A stretch of DNA of 60,672 bases, counting the filler, from Platydemus manokwari (taxonomy: Eukaryota): assembly GCA_037951405.1 (NCBI GenBank). It is 6 parts of 6 records of this genome, joined end to end, with 100 filler letters (N's around TTAATTAATTAA, not from the genome) between each part and the next. Parts side by side here need not be neighbours in the genome. Positions count along the whole stretch, not along the records: positions 40,123 to 50,543 come from JBBMOY011134884.1; 5 more parts are not named here. One strand, given 5' to 3'. Made by a program: the position numbers and the translations under genes. The notes under the pieces are model-generated. The model was given only the letters and a program-made list of their open reading frames with translations, did not search any database and was not told the origin of the DNA. Every line of letters begins with the position of its first letter. The stretch's first letter is position 1. Positions 40,123-50,543 of the stretch are shown here, piece by piece.

Positions 40123-40195
<73 letters not shown>

Positions 40196-40196
40196 G
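40123..40196. repeat. (TAT)n microsatellite at contig end
   Basis: About 24 perfect units. Similar tracts at ~50460-50543, 51665-51713 and 59935-59955. Confidence 0.95.
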
Positions 40197-43100
40197 GTCC
40201 AATTTTCTCTTGTTTTCATTTATTACAAATCTTAATCCACAACGGATTTTATTGTTTGTCTGTATTGATTATTTCAATAATTAGATTATTTTATATTTTT
40301 ATCTTATTTATTTCTTTCATGTCTACCTCTTAATTAATTGCCTTTTATCTTTAAAACGGTTAAATCTTTCACGTCACTGTGCTCCTTTTCCTTATTTAGT
40401 CCAAATCAATACTCTTAAATAAAAAAAAACTAAAACAAAAAGTTTTATTCCAGCAATTTATGGAAAAAATTCAAATATGATTATAATAATATCGATTTCA
40501 TATGTCAAAGAATAATGCGATAAATATACATATGATATGCAATTCAGTAAGCCTCAATATTAACGGTTGAATTGAATTTGAAAAATGCAAACAATAACGA
40601 TATATTTGCAAAATCGCAACCGGTTATGGAAAAACATGTTGTGACAATATTTCTGCACCAATAAAAAACCCTAATATTTGAATTTCAAAATCCGACCAAT
40701 CGTAGCAATCCATTTAAACAATCACAATTAAATTTGGAAAAAATTCCTTCACTGCTGAGCATGTGTGTATGTCAATTCTGTCAATGAAGTATGTGTGATT
40801 TTAAATATTTTTCTCATTTGTTTCTCATGATCATTATCCTTGATTTTGGTTTCAACCGTACTCAACGATTGCATTGTTTATGCCGACATTTAAATATATA
40901 TATATATATAGATTATTTCCCTCTAATTTGAGAGAAGATAATCGATTATATTTCTGTCAGTTTTATTTTTGTTTTAATAATCGACGAACAATATCCGGAT
41001 CGAGTGTTAACCATCTGCGCAATTCAAAAAGCTAACCAGATATTTCAACCCCCCCTCGATAAAAACATTGCTATATTATTAAATATATCGATAATGATTT
41101 CTTGTTTTAAATGGGGGTGTTTTGAATCACACAAAAACAAAACCAATTATTTAATAATCGATAAAAAATATTTGTTGAATCGTACGAAAATATTCCAAAA
41201 TGTCTATGAAAACAATGCCTTGTAAAACCATTGGATAGAAACCCATCAATAATTCATGGCATTCATCAATTCATAGACAAATTCCAAATTTAGGACATAT
41301 TCTTGAATGATAAATTCATAATTGTGGACTTTATTATTGATTTTAATGTGAAATGATATAATTTTTATGGATCATGCTAATATCGATCCATTGGTAATTT
41401 TCAAGGATTGATTTTCTCCAATAACTAGTGCTCGATGATTTTATCGATATTTTAATAATTTGTTTTAATTTACAATTATTCCATCACCACCAATAACAAC
41501 AACAACAACAACAACAACAAATCGTTCATCATCAAGGAAAAAACTTTTCTCCAGACTGGAAAAATCGTATACCAATTTCAACTGCCCCCTCCCCGATTAT
41601 TAATTCGTTAAAAATATTTATTATGCTGCCAACAAACACTCCCCAGCTCTCATTATCGAACATTGAAAATAGCTTGTTTTTTGCGAAAAGAATTTTGATA
41701 AAAAGCTTTGAAAAAAAAACTCAGTCATTAATTTATTCAAAAACCAAATCTCTAATTCCACGGCTTTGTTTTAATCGAACGCAGGTTTAAATATTATATT
41801 TCTAACAAATCGATAGAATTTGTGAAACAAACAAAAATTCCATTGAAATTTATTGTTCAGTGGTTGCTATAATTAAAATTCAATAACAATCAACATGTAT
41901 GGATATTATCGATTTTGGATTTTTTTTTATTTTGTTCCAAAAAAAATAATATTTTCTTTTTAATATTATTAATTCGAGACGGCTCCGGTTTTATATTAAT
42001 GAAAAAAAAATTGTTGAGATCATTTGTAAGTTGTTTACCATGCACACACGCACGCAATAGCACTACACAGAGGCACACACACCAACACACATAATACAAA
42101 GATTATGCATGTACAAGATGTTTGTGACTGGCTAAAACGGTGTGTGTGTGCGTGCTAGAATGTGTAGGTTGTAAATTGATGTGATGAGTACAATTTTATA
42201 CTGTATTCAATACACAGAGACGAAAAGACCAAAGCACAAAAGAACAGCTATAAGGCACAGTTACTAAATCTGGTCTCTTTACAGCACATGAGACCAACAA
42301 TCAAATCCACTAATCTCGCTCTCTCTCTATCTATATATCGCTCTACCTCTCTTGTAGTTCTAAGTGTCGGTAAGATCAAACGAGCCGCTATTGGCAAGCG
42401 TGCACCGCCCATTATAATGTAGCCAATGTGAATAACATTATTGATTGATGGCAATTATACAACCCAATTCTCTAACACTATCTGCCTGTCTGTCGGAAAT
42501 AGAAAAGGCTGTTTATGTTCTTCATTATAATGGCAGATAATTAAATACGACTGTCTCACGCTATGGACTCTATTTTCATAGTAAAACAAAATTTCGGACA
42601 GAATAATATCATAAGTAATTGTTTAAATTAATAAAATTATTTCATTTCATTATTTAATATACTGAACCCAAACAAACAAACAATCATAACGACGATGACG
42701 ACAACGATGATGACGACAACGAAGCGAATAAAAAAAAATGTCAACTATCGAAATTTTTACAATATGAATTTGTTGATTGATTTTTTGTTGTCATCGTGGG
42801 CATGGAAATTGACTTTTCTCCTTCTTTTTCTTCGTGTTTCCACCGAGTGTAGCCCGATAGAAATATTGCATAAAATAAATATATATATATATATTTTAAT
42901 GTCTTTTAACAATTCAAAAGCAACAACAGAAAAATAATAATATTTATTAGAAGATTAAAAACCAATTAAAAAAAATTGACGTTTTGTTTTAATTATTGGT
43001 GATTTTTATATTAATTACGCAATTTAAGTTTATTGGAGAGAGTTTGTCCCAACGCCTGGTTTCCTTTTTTTATCCCGAGGAATTAGTTTGTCATAAAATT

Positions 43101-43619
43101 TTCCAGATAACAATCTCGGGTTTTTTCTTTTTTGTCTTTTTCCTCAAACCCAGTAAAACAAAACACACACAACAAATAATAATAATAATAATATTATTCA
43201 ATACATTGAAAAATTGGAAAATCTATTTTTTCCTTTTTTAATCAACCATCAAAATATTTTTCCAAAAACAAATATAATAATTAAAATAAAAATATGAAAA
43301 AAAAAAGAAAAAAAAACTCATCATCAGTATAAAAAATTAAGAAAATCCGGCCTTCAAAAATTTCAACTTAATGCGTCGCGCGGGTGCTTGAAGAAAGAAA
43401 ATAAAATCAAACACAAAGCAGCAGAATAAGAAGAAGAAAAAATAATCATTGACGTTAGTTGTGCCAAACTGAGAATAGTGCTAGTGCTCACTATATAAAA
43501 TTGACTTTGAAAAACAACAAGCTTCAACCAAGTGTCTTCAGCCTAAAATTTAGTCATTGAGAAAAAAAAACTTTTTCAATTATTTGTGTGTACTGAGTGT
43601 GTACCTCCTGTAATTAGAT

Positions 43620-43808
43620 CGGCGGCGCATATCAGGAGATCAAAGAATCACTTTGATGAAGCCGCCATCGTAACCACCTGATTTAATTGGTTAGCTAGAT
43701 ACCGGCATACAAACAATAACCCGCACTCTCTCAATCGGTCTTTGATGCCGGTCCCGCCTCTCTGCAGCCGGTTTTTATGTCTCTAGAGCGGTACGCCTAC
43801 TTTGATCT
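43620..43808. promoter_or_regulatory. Candidate Wnt response element of sp5: four TCF/LEF sites with GC-rich Helper sites
   Basis: AGATCAAAG 43637-43645, CTTTGATG 43651-43658, CTTTGATG 43740-43747, CTTTGATCT 43800-43808. Helper-like CGGCGGC 43620-43626, GCCGCCA 43661-43667, ACCGGC 43701-43706, GCCGG 43747-43751 and 43767-43771, GCGGT 43788-43792. Confidence 0.8.
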
Positions 43809-44059
43809 AGATGATAAAGTTATGATTAGAAAATTCATAGTTGAAATCGTTTGCATGATCTCTAACACTGACTATTTTTCGTGTCGGTGTGTATATGTGT
43901 CTGGGTGTGCATTATAGTGTGAGAGTATGCAGGCTGTTTTGTGTGCGTGTGTATGTGTATTCGACAACACAGTAATAAAATGCCTGTTAGCTATGGCTGT
44001 ACTTTTTTCATAGCTGTTACTGAAATAAAAAGGCCTCATCTTGCGTTTACTAGTTTTTG

Positions 44060-44238
44060 ATTGGTCGGTTTAATTTACAAAGTCGTTTAAATTTATAGCG
44101 ACCATATATAAATTATCCATATATAGTTGTGAACAATATTATTTCATGTTTTTTCAAGACCTTTCATTCAAGTTCTCTACTGAACATTGAAGTCATTGGA
44201 AACCGTTTTATCACAGAACCAATCAATTATTTCTCAAG
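44060..44238 (+). promoter_or_regulatory. Putative sp5 core promoter and non-coding exon 1
   Basis: Inverted CCAAT (ATTGG 44060-44064), TATATAAA 44105-44112, strong donor AAG|GTGAGT at 44239, and acceptor TTTTAG ending at 44790, 33 nt before the ATG. Confidence 0.6.
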
Positions 44239-44823
44239 GTGAGTTTGTTAAGATTGTTTATTGATGTGTAATTTTTTTTTTAATATTTTTCAATCATCAT
44301 TATAATTCGTTATATTTCTTTAATATATTAATATATATTGATGTACATGTAATGATAGTTTAATTCGATATTTATAAATCGCTATAATAATATTCACACT
44401 GTATTTTTTGAAATGATTTCGAATCAAATATTACCTTGGTTTTGTTTTCAAATATGCCGCTCTACTGAAGGATTTTAATAAACACGTAAGAGCCATAAAA
44501 AGGAGATAACGAACAAAAATATTTGACATGAAAAATCGGAAGACTAACTCCAATTGTCGATAACAGGATGTTGTGAGTAGTAAAGCATAACTTGTCAATT
44601 TATTGTCTGTAAAAGCCCTGAGAATGATGAGGAATTCTAATTTGGCGCCATTACAGATAGATATGAGGCTGTGAGATTCGCAATAAATTAGGATGATTTC
44701 TTAGATCGAATCATTTGTTTTCTTTTATCAGTTGTTTTTTTTGGTTGGTTTCGACAACTTCATTGAAATTGATAATTCTATTCGTTTTAGATATATTATT
44801 CCAAAAACCAAAACAAAAACCCA

Positions 44824-46253
44824 ATGAACTCCGGACCTGCAATCATCAACATTCCTTCTGCACTGCACATTATTCCGAATTCACCAAGCTATTTCAACAA
44901 CAAAACACAACATCCATTGAATTGCCAGATCTCCCCATCCATCGATATGAGCTATGTGCAATCGCCGACCAATTGTTCGTCGAGATTCATGACGAATTCG
45001 AACGATTTCTGGCAAAGTCCCGAAATGGCGGCTCTTCAAAGAACGACTGAAAAGTTTTTCGTCAATCAAAATCTGATCACCAACAATCAACAACAAACCA
45101 TTCCCGTCAACTCGATCATGTCCAATGTTTGTCAGAATACACCAATCAGACCGATTGCGAGAAAACCGTGCATCGAACTCTCATCGCTTGATTCAAAAAA
45201 CCAAATACAATTACTGAATTCTCTCTCTACTCACAGTATAGAAGATTGTGTCGACAATTTCTTTCGTAGATCTATGAATTGCTTTTCTTCTCCATACACT
45301 CTACCCAGTCTATTAGGTTGTAAAGATTTCTCTTTAGATTATCCATCGGTCGACAGTATTGGAAGTAGCCCTTCACACATATCTGGTCTTTTGACGAATT
45401 CCAAAGCCCTGCCCACCAATCGAACAAGCATTCCACAAATCGGGCAGAGAAAATGTCAGAAGTGCACTTGTCCCAATTGCCATCAAGGTTTGAATTCGCG
45501 AGCCAATCTGAACGGAGCGAAAAAGGTCCATATTTGTTATATTTGTCACAAAACGTACGGAAAAACTAGTCATTTGAAAGCCCACATCCGGTGGCATAAC
45601 AACGATCGACCGTTCGTTTGTACGTATCATTTATGTTCCAAATCCTTCACGAGATCCGATGAATTGCAACGACACATGAGAACCCACACCGGTGAAAAGC
45701 GATTTGTATGCACGTTGTGCTTCAAACGATTCATGCGAAGCGACCATCTAGCTAAACACAAAAAAACCCACGAAGGCGTCGATCCAATTGTACTCGGAGC
45801 AGTAATGCAAAAGGACTCCACCTCGACCATAAAACAACAGAAATTGATCAATATAGATAAACCATATAAGGTAGGTAGTTATTTTTTTTTACCAAAACCA
45901 AATACCGCCTTTATGATTGAATGCGTTGTTTAATATGTTGTGATGGTTAGAAGTGTATTCATCTCATAAACTACTGATTTGTGCACCAGTGGTCATCATC
46001 ATCATTTAATGATATCAAAGGATTGAATGTTCTGAAATGTCGGTGATTTAAAAATAAAGAGTGGTTGATGGTTACTTTAACGATCATCAAAAGCAAATCG
46101 ATTTTAACCATTTTAATATTTTTCTAGAAGCAGCAGAACTGTAAAAAATCCAAATCAGGTCTTTCGGCGACGAACAGTACGATAAATTCTCCAGACCATA
46201 ACGGTAAAGAAAACATCATCATCGATGAAGATATTGACATAGAATCTATCTGA
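44824..46253 (+). CDS. sp5: Sp5/buttonhead-like C2H2 zinc-finger transcription factor; coding exons 44824-45870 and 46128-46253
   Basis: Btd box CTCPNC; three fingers [24 protein letters not shown] and [11 protein letters not shown] (LKAH, KSF and LAKH together fit Sp5); Sp-box-like SPEMAAL. Donor AAG|GTAGGT at 45871 and acceptor TTCTAG at 46127 give the tail KQQN...DEDIDIESI*. Confidence 0.9.
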
Positions 46254-49200
46254 TTATTCTTTTCGTTGTGTATAACAGTGTGATTATTATTATTATCATT
46301 ATTATTATTATTATTTCTTCGAATTTATTAGAATTTGCAGTGAAGTTTGACTTGTTTATTTGCTCATCAAGATATAGGTTACACTTCCATAATGAACCCC
46401 ATCAAAACCGCATCTACCGCTAGCTCTCTAACATTACCGCAATGAAATCATGATCATTTCAGCAACCAAAAGTGGTCCAATCTCTAATTGCTGTGACAAC
46501 ATGAATTCGCATTAAAATATGATAGAATCCCTCTTAATGGTGGGTGTGAGGGAATTCTAAATGATATTATTGAGGAGGATGATTGGGTGATTTCATAAAT
46601 AGGGGTCTTTATAATGGGGATAAAATAATATTTGATATAATCGTAACTTGGTTTGATGTTTGCTGCCTTTATCAAACTAGTGGTTGTTTGAATGAAGGAT
46701 AAAAACGCGGGAAATTGGTGCGAAAATTTGAAAATAGAATAGAAAATGTGCTTTATTTTTATTAGATAGGAAAAATGCCAGTAAACAATGTATTCCTTTG
46801 ACAAGGGAATGTATAATGAGACCTCTATTACTATCTATCGTTATTTGAAAGGTTAACAGAAAGACATAAAGACCAAACATATTTTTAACGACATTAATTT
46901 ATTCAAATTACCTTTTGCTAAGATGTGTTTTGTTGCTTGGTTTGATGGGAGTGATGTGCGAATCTATTTCATTTATCGAACAGTTCCAATCCAATAAGAT
47001 CTTCAAAAATCCATATGTACCGCATTTGCCAAAACAACACATATCGATACTTAGGAGTGTTTTGGAAAACCAGGTGCAATGAATTGTAGATGGCATAAGT
47101 CTTTTAAAGCAAAGGATTCGACGTGATTATCAGAAACTTTTTATATGATTTACAAAAGGTTTTTCACAACTTTTTATATGAAATAAGATAATTATATATA
47201 ATGATAAACAAATTTCTTGAGATATGCATAGAGGAGATAATGATATGTCAAATGAAACCTCGAATCTATCATTTTAGTGAGTCGTGGTTGGCAGATTCGA
47301 AAGAACACCGACATCATTCACCATTTTAATATGAGGATGTGTTAGGATTTCGCTTCATAAAATTAAATCTCTCACAGTAGACAAAGTTATACCATTGTTA
47401 TGATTGGGGGGGGGTAAATATTACCCCCTAGAGGTATGCGGACATTTTATTTAGGAATTTCTTTGTAAAATGTAGCAAACACTTCTTATGCCTTCCAATA
47501 ATCACACAACAAGTATGAAATCGCATATATTTATCGCTTCAACAATATATCAAAGCTCAAATGAGAACCGAACACGAGAAAAAACGAAAATCAACAGACA
47601 ACGGTATTCCAACCATATACTTCTCACCAAAATCCGCTCACTGAAAACTGCTTTTTCACGGCTTTGTTTAGCCTTTCACTCTTTTGAACTCGAATTCATC
47701 TCAATTCATGCATTTTATTTATCAATGGAAATATTGAATTCAACGAAGAGCGGATATCTCAACTCATTTTTAATAAAAGATTATGACTAAAAGGTGGCGG
47801 CATGTGCCGAGAACAGCTCTGGCGCTAAGGCTTTGCTTTGTTTGTGGATGGCTGCAATTCTGTTGTTTATATGTTGAATATGATTTGTAAATCGATAATA
47901 AAAAAAACTTAATTAAATTTACTTTCAATGGTTTCATCACCAATCGGTTTTTTGCGTTTTTGTCTGTTATTTTTATGGATATCAACTTATGATTATTATT
48001 ATTATCCTTTCTTAAATGGAATAATGAACCGAGTATGGAATTGAATTCATCTTTTATGAAATATACACAATCATCGTTAATCGTTCATCAAACTATCCTT
48101 ATAAAATGATAAGCCAATTTTTCTATTTTTATTATTTTGTTTAAATCATTGCAATTATTTAAATCGATAACAAAATAAAAATTAAATCAAGCATTAAAAC
48201 CGGGATGTTAAATTAATGGAGAAATTAACAAATATATTTATTTGCTGCTTTTCAAAACGAATAATTAAATTTTTTTTTCATTAAAAGAAAGGCAATTGTT
48301 TTTTTAAATGAACTAAAAAATTGAGTTATTTTTACAAATTAAATTATTCATCCATAACTTCCTATTGTTTTAAGATATTGTTGATATTTGAGATAAATAA
48401 ATATGATCACTTTTGATAATTTTTTTTTCGTGTAACGATTTTCGACTTGGAAAATCGACTACTTTTCCTCAACGATGGTGCCTTTCAATGTTACCTTCTG
48501 ACAATGTATTGATTCGACAAAATGAAATAGTTGTCTGAAAAAATTTGGTGACTTTACGACACTATGATGTCTTTTGTATTGGCGATATCATGAATTATTT
48601 CACAATCTTGGTGAAGAACTTGAAAGTTTTTAATGGGGAAAGTGATTTTTTCGAATTTTTATCAGAAATTAATCTACCAAGAAAACCTTGAAAATCCATG
48701 TGTTGAATTTATTTCAATTTATCAAAATATAGAATGTCTCACAACGGACAATCCACAAACAAAATCGCCAAGAAATCAATGAATATTTGAAAATGGTTTT
48801 GAATCGCAATAATTCTACTAGCTTTAAAAATTCGAATTCTATTCCATGATTGATGGCTTGATCAGTGTGTGTGTCTTTTCAAGTGTGCTACGATGTCAAT
48901 CGACAAAACTGTGCGTATTTTATACAACCGTATTTTTACAGCACATCAATCGATCGCATGGCAATTCCTTCTTTAATTAAGAGACCTTAATCGATTGAAA
49001 GTCTTAATACGCCTATCGATTTTTAAATTTCCGAGGATAGTTGTCAATATCATTTTTACTAATATCGACTTTTAACATTAATATTTTAGCTTCCTTCCGA
49101 CAACTTATAAAAAACCTCAATAGAAAATTATCCCGATAAATAAATAAATAAATAAATGTTTAATTTATTCTGTGATGGTTTTTTCTTTTTTGTTGTGCCT

Positions 49201-50494
49201 ACAAATGAGGATGAGTAAAACACAATACCATTACAAATATCAAGCCAATATGATTGCAAAAAATTAATTACTTAAATAATATAAATGCTGAAATAATTTT
49301 TACTCTTCATTGTTGAAAGAGAGACTATGAATTGTCCAACATCCACAACGCGGCATCTGTGGAAATTATCTCGTTGTAGATAGTTCTGATATGAAATTCC
49401 TCTAATTATAAATACACGAATGAGGTCTTGAACCGCCATTGTTGACAGGGACTAATATGAAACAACTAAAATAAATGATATCATATTTATGCTACATTTT
49501 CTTTTGCATATATTTCTTTTTAATTTCCCCCACAATTCGAATCAATTAAATTATTTTTTTTCTCTAATATTAATAAGCTAATCCAACATATTTCTCAATA
49601 ATGTTGTCGATTCGGGTTTTTTCCCCCTATTTTGACAAGTGGGAAACAAAGAAATTCGAAAGAAAATTTGGTTTCTGGAGACAGATTTTTCGTACTTTCT
49701 ATAAGCGACGAACACAAGAAACAATATTGTCTGGAAATCATAGGAAATTTGAGGAATAGTAGAAAAAGAAATCAAGTATTTATTGATTTTTGGGAATGAA
49801 TTTTCGTGTTGTAAAATGTCGTTATGAGTCATTCTGATCGAATTTGTGCGGATCGACAATTGGAACAATTGACGATTGAACGAGATCTAAATTAGCGACC
49901 ACTAATTCTATAATAATCCGCACCAGTGTTCTGGGTTATTATAATCATTCGAAAATTCAAATAATGTGATCGCAAATGAATCGATAGACAATAAACTGAT
50001 AAATAAACTCAATTGTGACCTTTACAAAGAAAGAAAAATCTCATCAGATTGGTTTTGAAAAACTTTACATAGCTTTGTTCCTCATCATTAAATAACTTTC
50101 GATAATGTACTTCTAGCGATGTCCCGAAATAAGTTTCTAGTTGGCTATCATGATTTCGATTATTTATGTTGTAAACATTTTCGAAATTTGATTCGTGCCT
50201 GTCGCAATAGTAATTAAACGACTCGTTTCCATGTTGAATGATTATGTTGGTTTTCAGGTAGAGATGCATACGATTTATTTGCTGTGTGTTGTGAATTTGC
50301 GTTTGTGTATAACAATGGATTGCTCTATTTTGACAGTAGAAAATTATTTATAATATGTTAATAATAGTTCTGTATTGTATTGCATTGCGAACAAAGTTGG
50401 CAGTCAAAAAGTGATTTCAATAAATTATAACGGATTATTTCATTTATATTATTAATAATAATTAATATAATAATAATAATAATAATTATTATTA

Positions 50495-50543
<49 letters not shown>

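Follow-up and report, generated by a model that had tools for sequence, protein, structure and literature searches.

The sp5 gene of the triclad flatworm Platydemus manokwari is preceded by a dense cluster of candidate TCF binding sites and GC-rich Helper-type motifs. The window analysed here is a stretch of 60,672 nucleotides (nt), filler included, made up of six parts of the genome assembly GCA_037951405.1 joined end to end; the cluster and its gene lie in the part at positions 40123-50543 (from JBBMOY011134884.1), a 10.4-kb piece with 31% GC and no N's that served as the comparison piece. The region from 43577 to 43809 is interpreted, with a probability of roughly 60%, as the promoter-proximal Wnt/beta-catenin-TCF response module of triclad sp5, derived from an old bilaterian Sp5 module and enlarged by extra TCF sites. 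The narrower proposition, that the cluster is a TCF-dependent Wnt element, is likely to hold.

The cluster contains four perfect CTTTGAT cores packed into 168 nt (43639-43806), as found by reading the sequence and by motif scanning. The local GC content is 0.42, compared with 0.31 across the 10.4-kb piece, and the TATA-like TATATAAAT of a putative core promoter follows 297-485 nt downstream. The cluster is thereby placed 1.0-1.2 kb upstream of the sp5 start codon and 0.33-0.52 kb upstream of the inferred transcription start. An earlier note on this DNA had described four CTTTGAT sites in a GC-rich island upstream of a TATA-like box, and all of the motif positions that it gave are exact to the base. 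Direct and inverted repeat families were looked for, and none accounts for the TCF sites; the longest open reading frame (ORF) across the cluster is 46 amino acids, and no Rfam family has a match in the 10.4-kb piece.

The individual sites are arranged as follows. Candidate TCF/HMG site 1 reads TCTTTGATCTC on the minus strand (43636-43646) and contains AGATCAAAG (43637-43645), which is separated by 10 nt from a minus-strand candidate Helper, CGGCGGC (GCCGCCG on the minus strand; 43620-43626), and by 5 nt from CTTTGATG (43651-43658) on the plus strand. The latter belongs to candidate site 2, ACTTTGATGAA (43650-43660), and after a gap of 2 nt it is followed by the plus-strand candidate Helper GCCGCCA (43661-43667), which abuts the 11-bp HMG site directly. 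An inverted CCAAT box (ATTGG, minus strand, 43686-43690) lies 18 nt beyond this Helper. Candidate site 3, TCTTTGATGCC (43739-43749, plus strand, core 43740-43746), has a plus-strand CCCGCCT (43753-43759) placed 3 bp to its 3' side; this motif fits five of the seven Helper positions, and it could equally be an Sp/KLF-type GC box. Candidate site 4, ACTTTGATCTA (43799-43809, plus strand, core 43800-43806), has no Helper.

The grammar of such sites was defined by Archbold 2014 (PMC4154663), in which an HMG site is 11 bp long and follows SCTTTGWWSWW, and a Helper follows GCCGCCR. At least one SCTTTGWWSWW-type site is present, the region holding four perfect cores of which two are extended to AGATCAAAG. 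Under the same scheme, site 2 is in the FF0 configuration, site 1 in FF9 (9 bp between HMG site and Helper) and site 3 in an imperfect FF3, with the FF0 and FF9 pairs each having a Helper of the GCCGCCR or RCCGCCR form within the range of about 0-12 bp in AK or FF orientation. FF0 is one of the two best-bound and most active configurations for Drosophila TCF/Pangolin, and human TCF1E in vitro prefers AK2-9 or FF0-11 (PMC4154663). All three GC motifs are found on the 3' side of their own HMG site, in one orientation and at a distance of 0-9 bp. This common side and orientation is what a bipartite TCF site predicts, and an unrelated GC-binding factor does not predict it. By the published definitions, the FF0 and FF9 pairs are in orientations known to work for C-clamp TCFs.

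This arrangement is strongly non-random. The 10.4-kb piece contains six CTTTGAT cores where 3.1 are expected, and four of the six are inside the cluster. Of 5000 dinucleotide shuffles of the piece, 0.02% had four or more cores inside 170 nt (P about 2e-4), and four cores were reached in 0 of 20,000 shuffles of the local 601 nt. For the Helper motifs, the four 11-bp HMG sites were held fixed and the remaining 257 nt of 43560-43860 were shuffled in 200,000 trials. Two HMG sites each with a same-orientation GCCGCCR at most 12 bp away on the 3' side were never recovered (0/200,000; <5e-6), and two HMG sites with a Helper in either orientation appeared in 2.5e-5 of the local shuffles. The motif definitions had been picked by the earlier reader after viewing the sequence, so that these shuffle figures are somewhat inflated, though the margin is still large. 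The enrichment against a shuffled background that the earlier note had put forward as a check is thus borne out both for the cluster (2e-4) and for the two FF pairs (0/200,000).

A second line of evidence comes from the Sp5 promoters of other phyla. The loci compared were those of Patella vulgata (L126), Amphiura filiformis (L127) and Gopherus flavomarginatus (L131), together with an invertebrate Logan contig (L004) that carries a typical Sp5 with an Sp box. Two promoter-proximal modules, located 250-640 bp upstream of the start codon, are common to Patella, Amphiura and Gopherus, and the L004 contig has the distal one. In the distal module, a CCAAT box is followed after about 20 nt by CCTTTGATC and after another 5-9 nt by CCAATTATTTGT; in Patella, Amphiura and Gopherus the bases following the distal TCF site include CCAATTATTTRT, and the site of L004 has an AK6 Helper (ACCGCCA). 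The proximal module is about 170 nt downstream of the distal module and inverted relative to it, reading on the minus strand as a GCCGCC-like motif, CCAATCAG (CCAGTCAG in Gopherus), 15 nt, CTTTGA(T/A)G(W)(W), 1 nt, (G/C)CCGC(C/T)(A/G) and CCAAT. The proximal module of the three species is therefore an FF1 HMG-Helper pair between NF-Y-type boxes. The two modules, each of roughly 80 nt, align across the phyla (L126:9325-9625, L127:9505-9806, L131:5500-5800), with nhmmer scores of 54-67 bits, the profiles having been made from the three sequences themselves. Such collinearity of Sp5 promoter modules across phyla seems not to have been described previously in the papers searched.

The planarian cluster can be aligned with this arrangement. 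Positions 43628-43667 are collinear with the proximal module, consisting of CATATCAG (43628-43635, plus strand), exactly 15 nt, CTTTGATGAA, 0 nt and GCCGCCA. The first of these elements is a degenerate counterpart of the NF-Y-type CCAATCAG, with exactly 15 nt between it and the CTTTGAT of site 2. The order CCAATCAG, 15 nt, CTTTGAW GWW, 0-1 nt, S-CCGC-Y-R is therefore present, with the CCAAT part of the first box degenerate. CTTTGATGAA, the last ten bases of site 2, is identical in the proximal Sp5 site of Amphiura. ATCAK-N15-CTTTGAWGWW has one match in the window and none in 100 shuffles, and among 131 loci (809 kb) the pattern was found only in the Patella and Amphiura Sp5 promoters. In addition, the plus-strand CAATTATTTGTGT box at 43577-43589 aligns as the counterpart of the one that comes after the distal TCF site in the three species of the comparison. 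Its 11-mer CAATTATTTRT has a single occurrence in the 10.4-kb piece (43577-43587) and is the same in the Sp5 promoters of L126, L127 and L131; this CAATTATTTGT box is 30-40 nt upstream of the planarian module.

Profiles built from the three other species only pointed to the same places. The top nhmmer match of the proximal profile in the piece is at 43630-43669 (E 0.059) and that of the distal/box profile is at 43576-43599 (E 0.18), with a second match of the distal profile at 43781-43812, over site 4 (E 0.9). The 809 kb of other loci seldom give comparable scores. Because the proximal match leans on motifs that were already known, the independent information resides in the 15-nt spacing to ATCAG and in the box. 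The site-2/Helper pair, one half of the mirror module in the earlier note, has a counterpart in the module of mollusc, echinoderm and reptile Sp5 promoters.

The comparison also bears on the left half of the cluster. CGGCGGC (43620-43626) holds the place of the GC motif that lies beside CCAATCAG in the other phyla, on the opposite strand. Site 1 falls inside the ancestral 15-nt spacer, which is free of TCF sites in the other species and therefore makes site 1 look like a planarian gain; by this alignment, TCF site 1 is probably lineage-specific. The earlier note had described sites 1 and 2 with their Helpers as a mirror module. The constituent motifs are exact, but the two halves mirror each other only loosely (gaps of 10 and 2 nt), and comparison with the other phyla does not favor a single ancestral palindrome, since the left half looks lineage-specific. 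The overall likeness to the Patella, Amphiura and Gopherus promoters consists of ATCAG, 15 nt, CTTTGAW GWW, 0-1 nt, a GCCGCC-like Helper and the CAATTATTTGT box, all a few hundred bases upstream of Sp5. The window differs in having up to three extra TCF sites, although site 4 aligns weakly to the distal CCTTTGATCTC of the other phyla and may correspond to the ancestral distal site.

Two further sequences have similar bases on the 3' side of an Sp5 TCF site. The 5' untranslated region of a triclad sp5 mRNA (L002:18-40) opens with a perfect CCTTTGATC followed by GAAGCCTG, and L004:3865-3890 contains CCTTTGATC, ATC and GAAGCCTG; site 2 of the window reads CTTTGATGAAGCC. These three may have a common 3' flank. 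The mRNA itself (JGI 3300030569, Ga0247628_1009607; Logan SRR7686494) is a full-length triclad sp5 transcript in a dataset that is filed as environmental.

The gene downstream of the cluster is sp5, as judged from its predicted protein. An ORF on the plus strand (44824-45933) encodes a Btd box and three C2H2 zinc fingers, the latter with Pfam zf-C2H2 matches, and it is 89%, 82%, 80% and 77% identical to the triclad Sp5 proteins P0001, P0002, P0003 and P0004, respectively. P0003 is the named Sp5 of Dugesia japonica. P0004 is probably the Schmidtea mediterranea protein; a published in situ hybridization primer encodes its SVRNSP. Beyond triclads the matches are Sp5 proteins of many phyla, and among the matches listed the more distant ones are mostly annotated as Sp5. 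The N-terminal Sp box of the L004 protein is present neither in the window protein nor in the other triclad proteins. These protein comparisons used the ORF 44824-45933 by itself rather than the joined two-exon model of 390 amino acids. The assignment of the gene as sp5 and of the cluster as promoter-proximal in the earlier note is sound, given the Btd box, the three C2H2 fingers and the 76-89% identity to triclad Sp5.

The N-terminus is common to all five triclad sequences, arguing that 44824 is the start codon. The first coding exon on the plus strand (44824-45870) contains 349 codons from the ATG, with the splice acceptor at 44790/44791 and a donor (aag/gtaggt) after 45870; the last coding exon (46128-46253, plus strand) adds 41 codons and the stop, and it encodes the conserved ...EDIDIESI tail. 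Upstream, a putative core promoter on the plus strand (44060-44113), predicted from the sequence, is composed of an inverted CCAAT box (44060-44064) and the TATA-like TATATAAAT (44105-44113), which would place the start site near 44140. A putative non-coding exon 1 would then extend from 44140, its predicted 5' end, to a plus-strand donor (caag/gtgagt) at 44238/44239. The 5' untranslated region of the triclad mRNA L002 was compared with this putative exon, and the similarity is not above that of shuffled controls. Just before the donor, at 44217-44232, the exon tail contains CCAATCAATTATTTCT, a second near-copy of the CCAATTATTTGT box.

Intron 1 of sp5 contains a 250-nt block (44446-44692) that is 82% identical to positions 36-289 of L001, a genomic contig of a sister species; the rest of the intron is unaligned. 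The block, which holds an E2F-like TTTGGCGCC as well as GATA- and SOX-like cores, may be an intronic enhancer.

How the region might operate can be outlined from these features. When Wnt signaling is high, stabilized beta-catenin would join TCFs that are bound through their HMG domains at the four ATCAAAG sites, and the complex would drive transcription from the CCAAT/TATA-like promoter about 0.3-0.5 kb downstream. The Helper-type motifs 3' of three of the sites (FF0, FF9 and the imperfect FF3) would serve as a second half-site that raises affinity and specificity. With regard to origin, CATATCAG, 15 nt, CTTTGATGAA and GCCGCCA, together with the CAATTATTTGT box, would descend from the module of mollusc, echinoderm and reptile Sp5 promoters. 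The lineage would have gained TCF site 1 and possibly sites 3 and 4, and the module would have been compacted and inverted with respect to the box and the gene.

Several observations weigh against this interpretation. The first position of the HMG consensus is A or T, never G or C, in all four sites. The profile matches are individually weak (E 0.06 and 0.18), and the proximal one rests largely on motifs that the earlier reader had already chosen. Both of the flanking CCAAT boxes are gone: the upstream one reads CATAT, and in place of the CCAAT that directly follows the Helper in other phyla, the nearest ATTGG in the window is 18 nt downstream. There is no TCF site beside the window box, where the ancestral distal TCF site would stand. 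Relative to box and gene, the planarian module is flipped, and about 30 nt separate it from the box, compared with about 170 nt elsewhere. Among more distant loci, no TCF cluster or Helper pair was found within the upstream 10 kb of Sp-family genes in the neodermatans Calicophoron (L005), Mesocestoides (L128) and Paragonimus (L129) or in Manduca (L130), a result that is weak evidence because it is uncertain whether these genes are sp5 orthologues and where their transcription starts. Metagenomes scanned for the core module gave no match. Among close relatives, the sister-species contig L001 (Logan SRR33002330) extends no further than intron 1, breaking off 527 nt upstream of the ATG; L002 and L003 are spliced mRNAs, and the proteins P0003 and P0004 come with no contig.

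The same direction is taken by two reports on flatworm TCFs. The C-clamp is stated in the secondary literature to be present in all invertebrate TCFs except those of 'Planaria and Platyhelminthes' (PMC5996498), and for Smed-TCF-1 to -3, Su 2017 lists only regions for beta-catenin binding and Groucho binding, the HMG region and the nuclear localization signal (PMC5643146). S. mediterranea has three to five TCF genes, of which only some have a beta-catenin-binding domain (PMC5643146, PMC8651982). The earlier note had presumed C-clamp TCFs in this lineage, a presumption at odds with the flatworm exception (PMC5996498) and with the absence of a C-clamp from the regions listed in PMC5643146. Its broader proposal of a bipartite Wnt response element has consequently fared unevenly: the sp5 identity, the promoter-proximal position and the non-random HMG/Helper grammar stand, and the presumed C-clamp reader is doubtful.

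A metagenome scan with the degenerate HMG-box peptide WSARDNYG recovered about 120 loci, none of them recognizably from a flatworm and none from the sample that contains the triclad sp5 mRNA. Many of the loci are TCF genes of other animals, most of which have a C-clamp where the C-terminus is present. In the full-length or C-terminally extended TCFs that were checked (e.g. L006, L014, L022, L045, L046, L051, L055, L106 and L116), the C-clamp is of the CRA[RVI][FY]G type and follows the HMG box, sometimes past a linker of about 50 residues or more. Many of the contigs recovered, L006 to L125, are filed as metagenomic and carry TCF/LEF exons or cDNAs of a host animal.

The reported lack of a C-clamp is in tension with an intact Helper at the position where mollusc, echinoderm and reptile promoters have one, as does the human promoter according to the literature. 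Whether the GC motifs are functional parts of the element at all is close to an even question, with the answer yes slightly the less favored. It is doubtful that a C-clamp reads them. A tentative proposal, for which the odds are comparably modest, is that planarians still use Helper recognition at sp5, either through an overlooked C-clamp TCF isoform, paralogue or stand-alone protein or through some other GC-reading partner that took over; either way, the module (NF-Y box, 15 nt, TCF site and Helper, along with the CAATTATTTGT box) would be a regulatory element conserved throughout bilaterians and identifiable in a vertebrate, a mollusc, an echinoderm and a flatworm. The papers searched seem to contain no description of an optimal Helper pair where the animal's TCFs are reported to have no reading domain.

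The main competing possibility is that the region is a TCF-only Wnt element and that the GC motifs are either relics of ancestral Helpers or sites for Sp/KLF proteins (including Sp5 autoregulation) or a YY1-type factor. This is unlikely, though it is favored by the report that flatworm TCFs have no C-clamp (PMC5996498) and by findings in both Hydra and mouse, where Sp5 occupies its own promoter and interacts with TCF (PMC6338789). CCCGCCT at 43753-43759 does resemble a GC box. GCCGCCATC at 43661-43669 resembles the long YY1-type motif. However, GCCGCC is a poor Sp-type box, the HOMER motif for Sp5 being RGKGGGCGGAGC (PMC9849279), and all three GC motifs keep a single orientation on the 3' side of an HMG site at 0-9 bp. 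A pure relic, moreover, would be unlikely to keep seven bases and an abutting position in a fast-evolving, AT-rich genome.

Two other explanations would dispense with Wnt activation altogether. In one of these, HMG factors that act independently of beta-catenin or as repressors (TCF paralogues without the beta-catenin-binding domain, or SOX proteins) would use the sites to keep sp5 off anteriorly or in particular cell types. The three to five S. mediterranea TCFs, only some of which have the beta-catenin-binding domain (PMC5643146, PMC8651982), allow for such specialization, but the fall of sp5 after wnt1 or beta-catenin-1 RNA interference (RNAi) fits activation instead (PMC9849279), and the homologous human module is activating. 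The sites themselves, ATCAAAG preceded by AG or C, are classic TCF/LEF sites. SOX proteins prefer ACAAAG or ACAATG. Use of the sites by such factors is therefore improbable. In the other explanation, short motifs would simply have aggregated by chance in a GC-richer patch with no regulatory role. The motifs are indeed short, the cross-phylum profiles have weak E-values, and a reader who looked upstream of a known Wnt target has introduced some selection; set against this are the shuffle probabilities given above (2e-4 for the cluster, <5e-6 for the two FF pairs) and, independent of the motifs the reader had chosen, the spacing of exactly 15 nt to ATCAG and a CAATTATTTGT box that occurs only once. 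A chance origin accordingly has very little to recommend it.

The interpretation of the region as a Wnt/beta-catenin-TCF response module is in keeping with what is known of sp5 regulation. In S. mediterranea, sp5 is a posterior gene that goes down after wnt1 or beta-catenin-1 RNAi, and a TCF motif was reported in its cis-regulatory elements (Pascual-Carreras 2023, PMC9849279); the annotation of the gene includes a marked promoter peak and, about 3 kb upstream, an enhancer (Ivankovic 2024, PMC11410931). The Hydra Sp5 promoter contains five putative TCF sites in 3 kb and drives a Wnt-responsive reporter (Vogg 2019, PMC6338789). The planarian and Hydra systems therefore have in common with the window TCF motifs in the regulatory DNA of sp5, a gene under Wnt/beta-catenin control, but Helper motifs and site grammar are not described in those papers (PMC9849279, PMC11410931, PMC6338789). 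The published quantitative PCR primers for Smed-sp5 (PMC9849279 supplement) each mismatch the window at 3 of 20 positions, so that the window is not S. mediterranea DNA; at 80% protein identity it does not match D. japonica either, and the window protein instead pairs with P0001 (89%).

Among the closest parallels is human SP5, which is a published C-clamp/Helper-dependent Wnt target with a functional FF1 pair and TCF1E binding (PMC4154663, PMC4999783, PMC4267635). The earlier note had given Sp5 as a conserved Wnt/beta-catenin target, and these three papers present the human gene as such a target. In the comparison with the human promoter (Hoverter 2012 and 2014, summarized in the three papers), the gene is the same, several TCF sites lie in the proximal promoter with GC-rich Helpers a few bp away, and an FF pair is present (FF1 in human, FF0 in the planarian). 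The number, order and orientation of the sites differ. The human reader is also known, namely the C-clamp of TCF1E/TCF4E, on the basis of chromatin immunoprecipitation (ChIP) sequencing and mutagenesis, whereas the TCFs of the flatworm lineage are reported to have no C-clamp. The Wnt-responsive cis-regulatory modules of Drosophila such as nkd-IntE (Chang 2008; PMC4154663) share the GCCGCCR consensus, its close pairing with SCTTTGWWSWW and FF0 as an optimal configuration. Fly FF pairs lose activity rapidly with spacing, so that the planarian FF9 pair would be weak by fly rules, and neither the genes nor the organism are the same. Both Wnt-response modules built on HMG-Helper pairs and the preference of C-clamp TCFs for Sp5 as a target are already known; it is the lineage that is new.

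Other features of the surrounding DNA can be noted briefly. An imperfect microsatellite rich in TG lies between the TCF cluster and the core promoter (43877-43958) and includes two direct repeats of 22 nt, separated by 60 nt. Another GC-richer island (42370-42470), some 1.7 kb upstream of where the start site is predicted, holds a pair of CCAAT boxes, the GC box CACCGCCCA and, beside GCCGC, AGATCAAAC, which comes close to a TCF site; this island could be a distal enhancer or an alternative promoter.

Sp5 is among the few Wnt targets common to cnidarians, planarians, acoels, sea urchins and vertebrates, and the cis wiring of the Wnt-Sp5 link is known in detail for mammals only. The region described here provides a compact 230-bp candidate for a planarian Wnt-response element with an explicit site grammar, which could be used in heterologous reporters and as a landmark for planarian chromatin-accessibility (ATAC) and ChIP data. 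It also sharpens a question about the lineage: is the C-clamp truly absent from flatworm TCFs, and which factor would then recognize a Helper in so perfect a position? Judging from the comparison across phyla, the TCF-Helper pair at Sp5 may be older than the bilaterian radiation. If it is, Sp5 would be a good locus for learning how enhancer grammar survives extreme sequence turnover.

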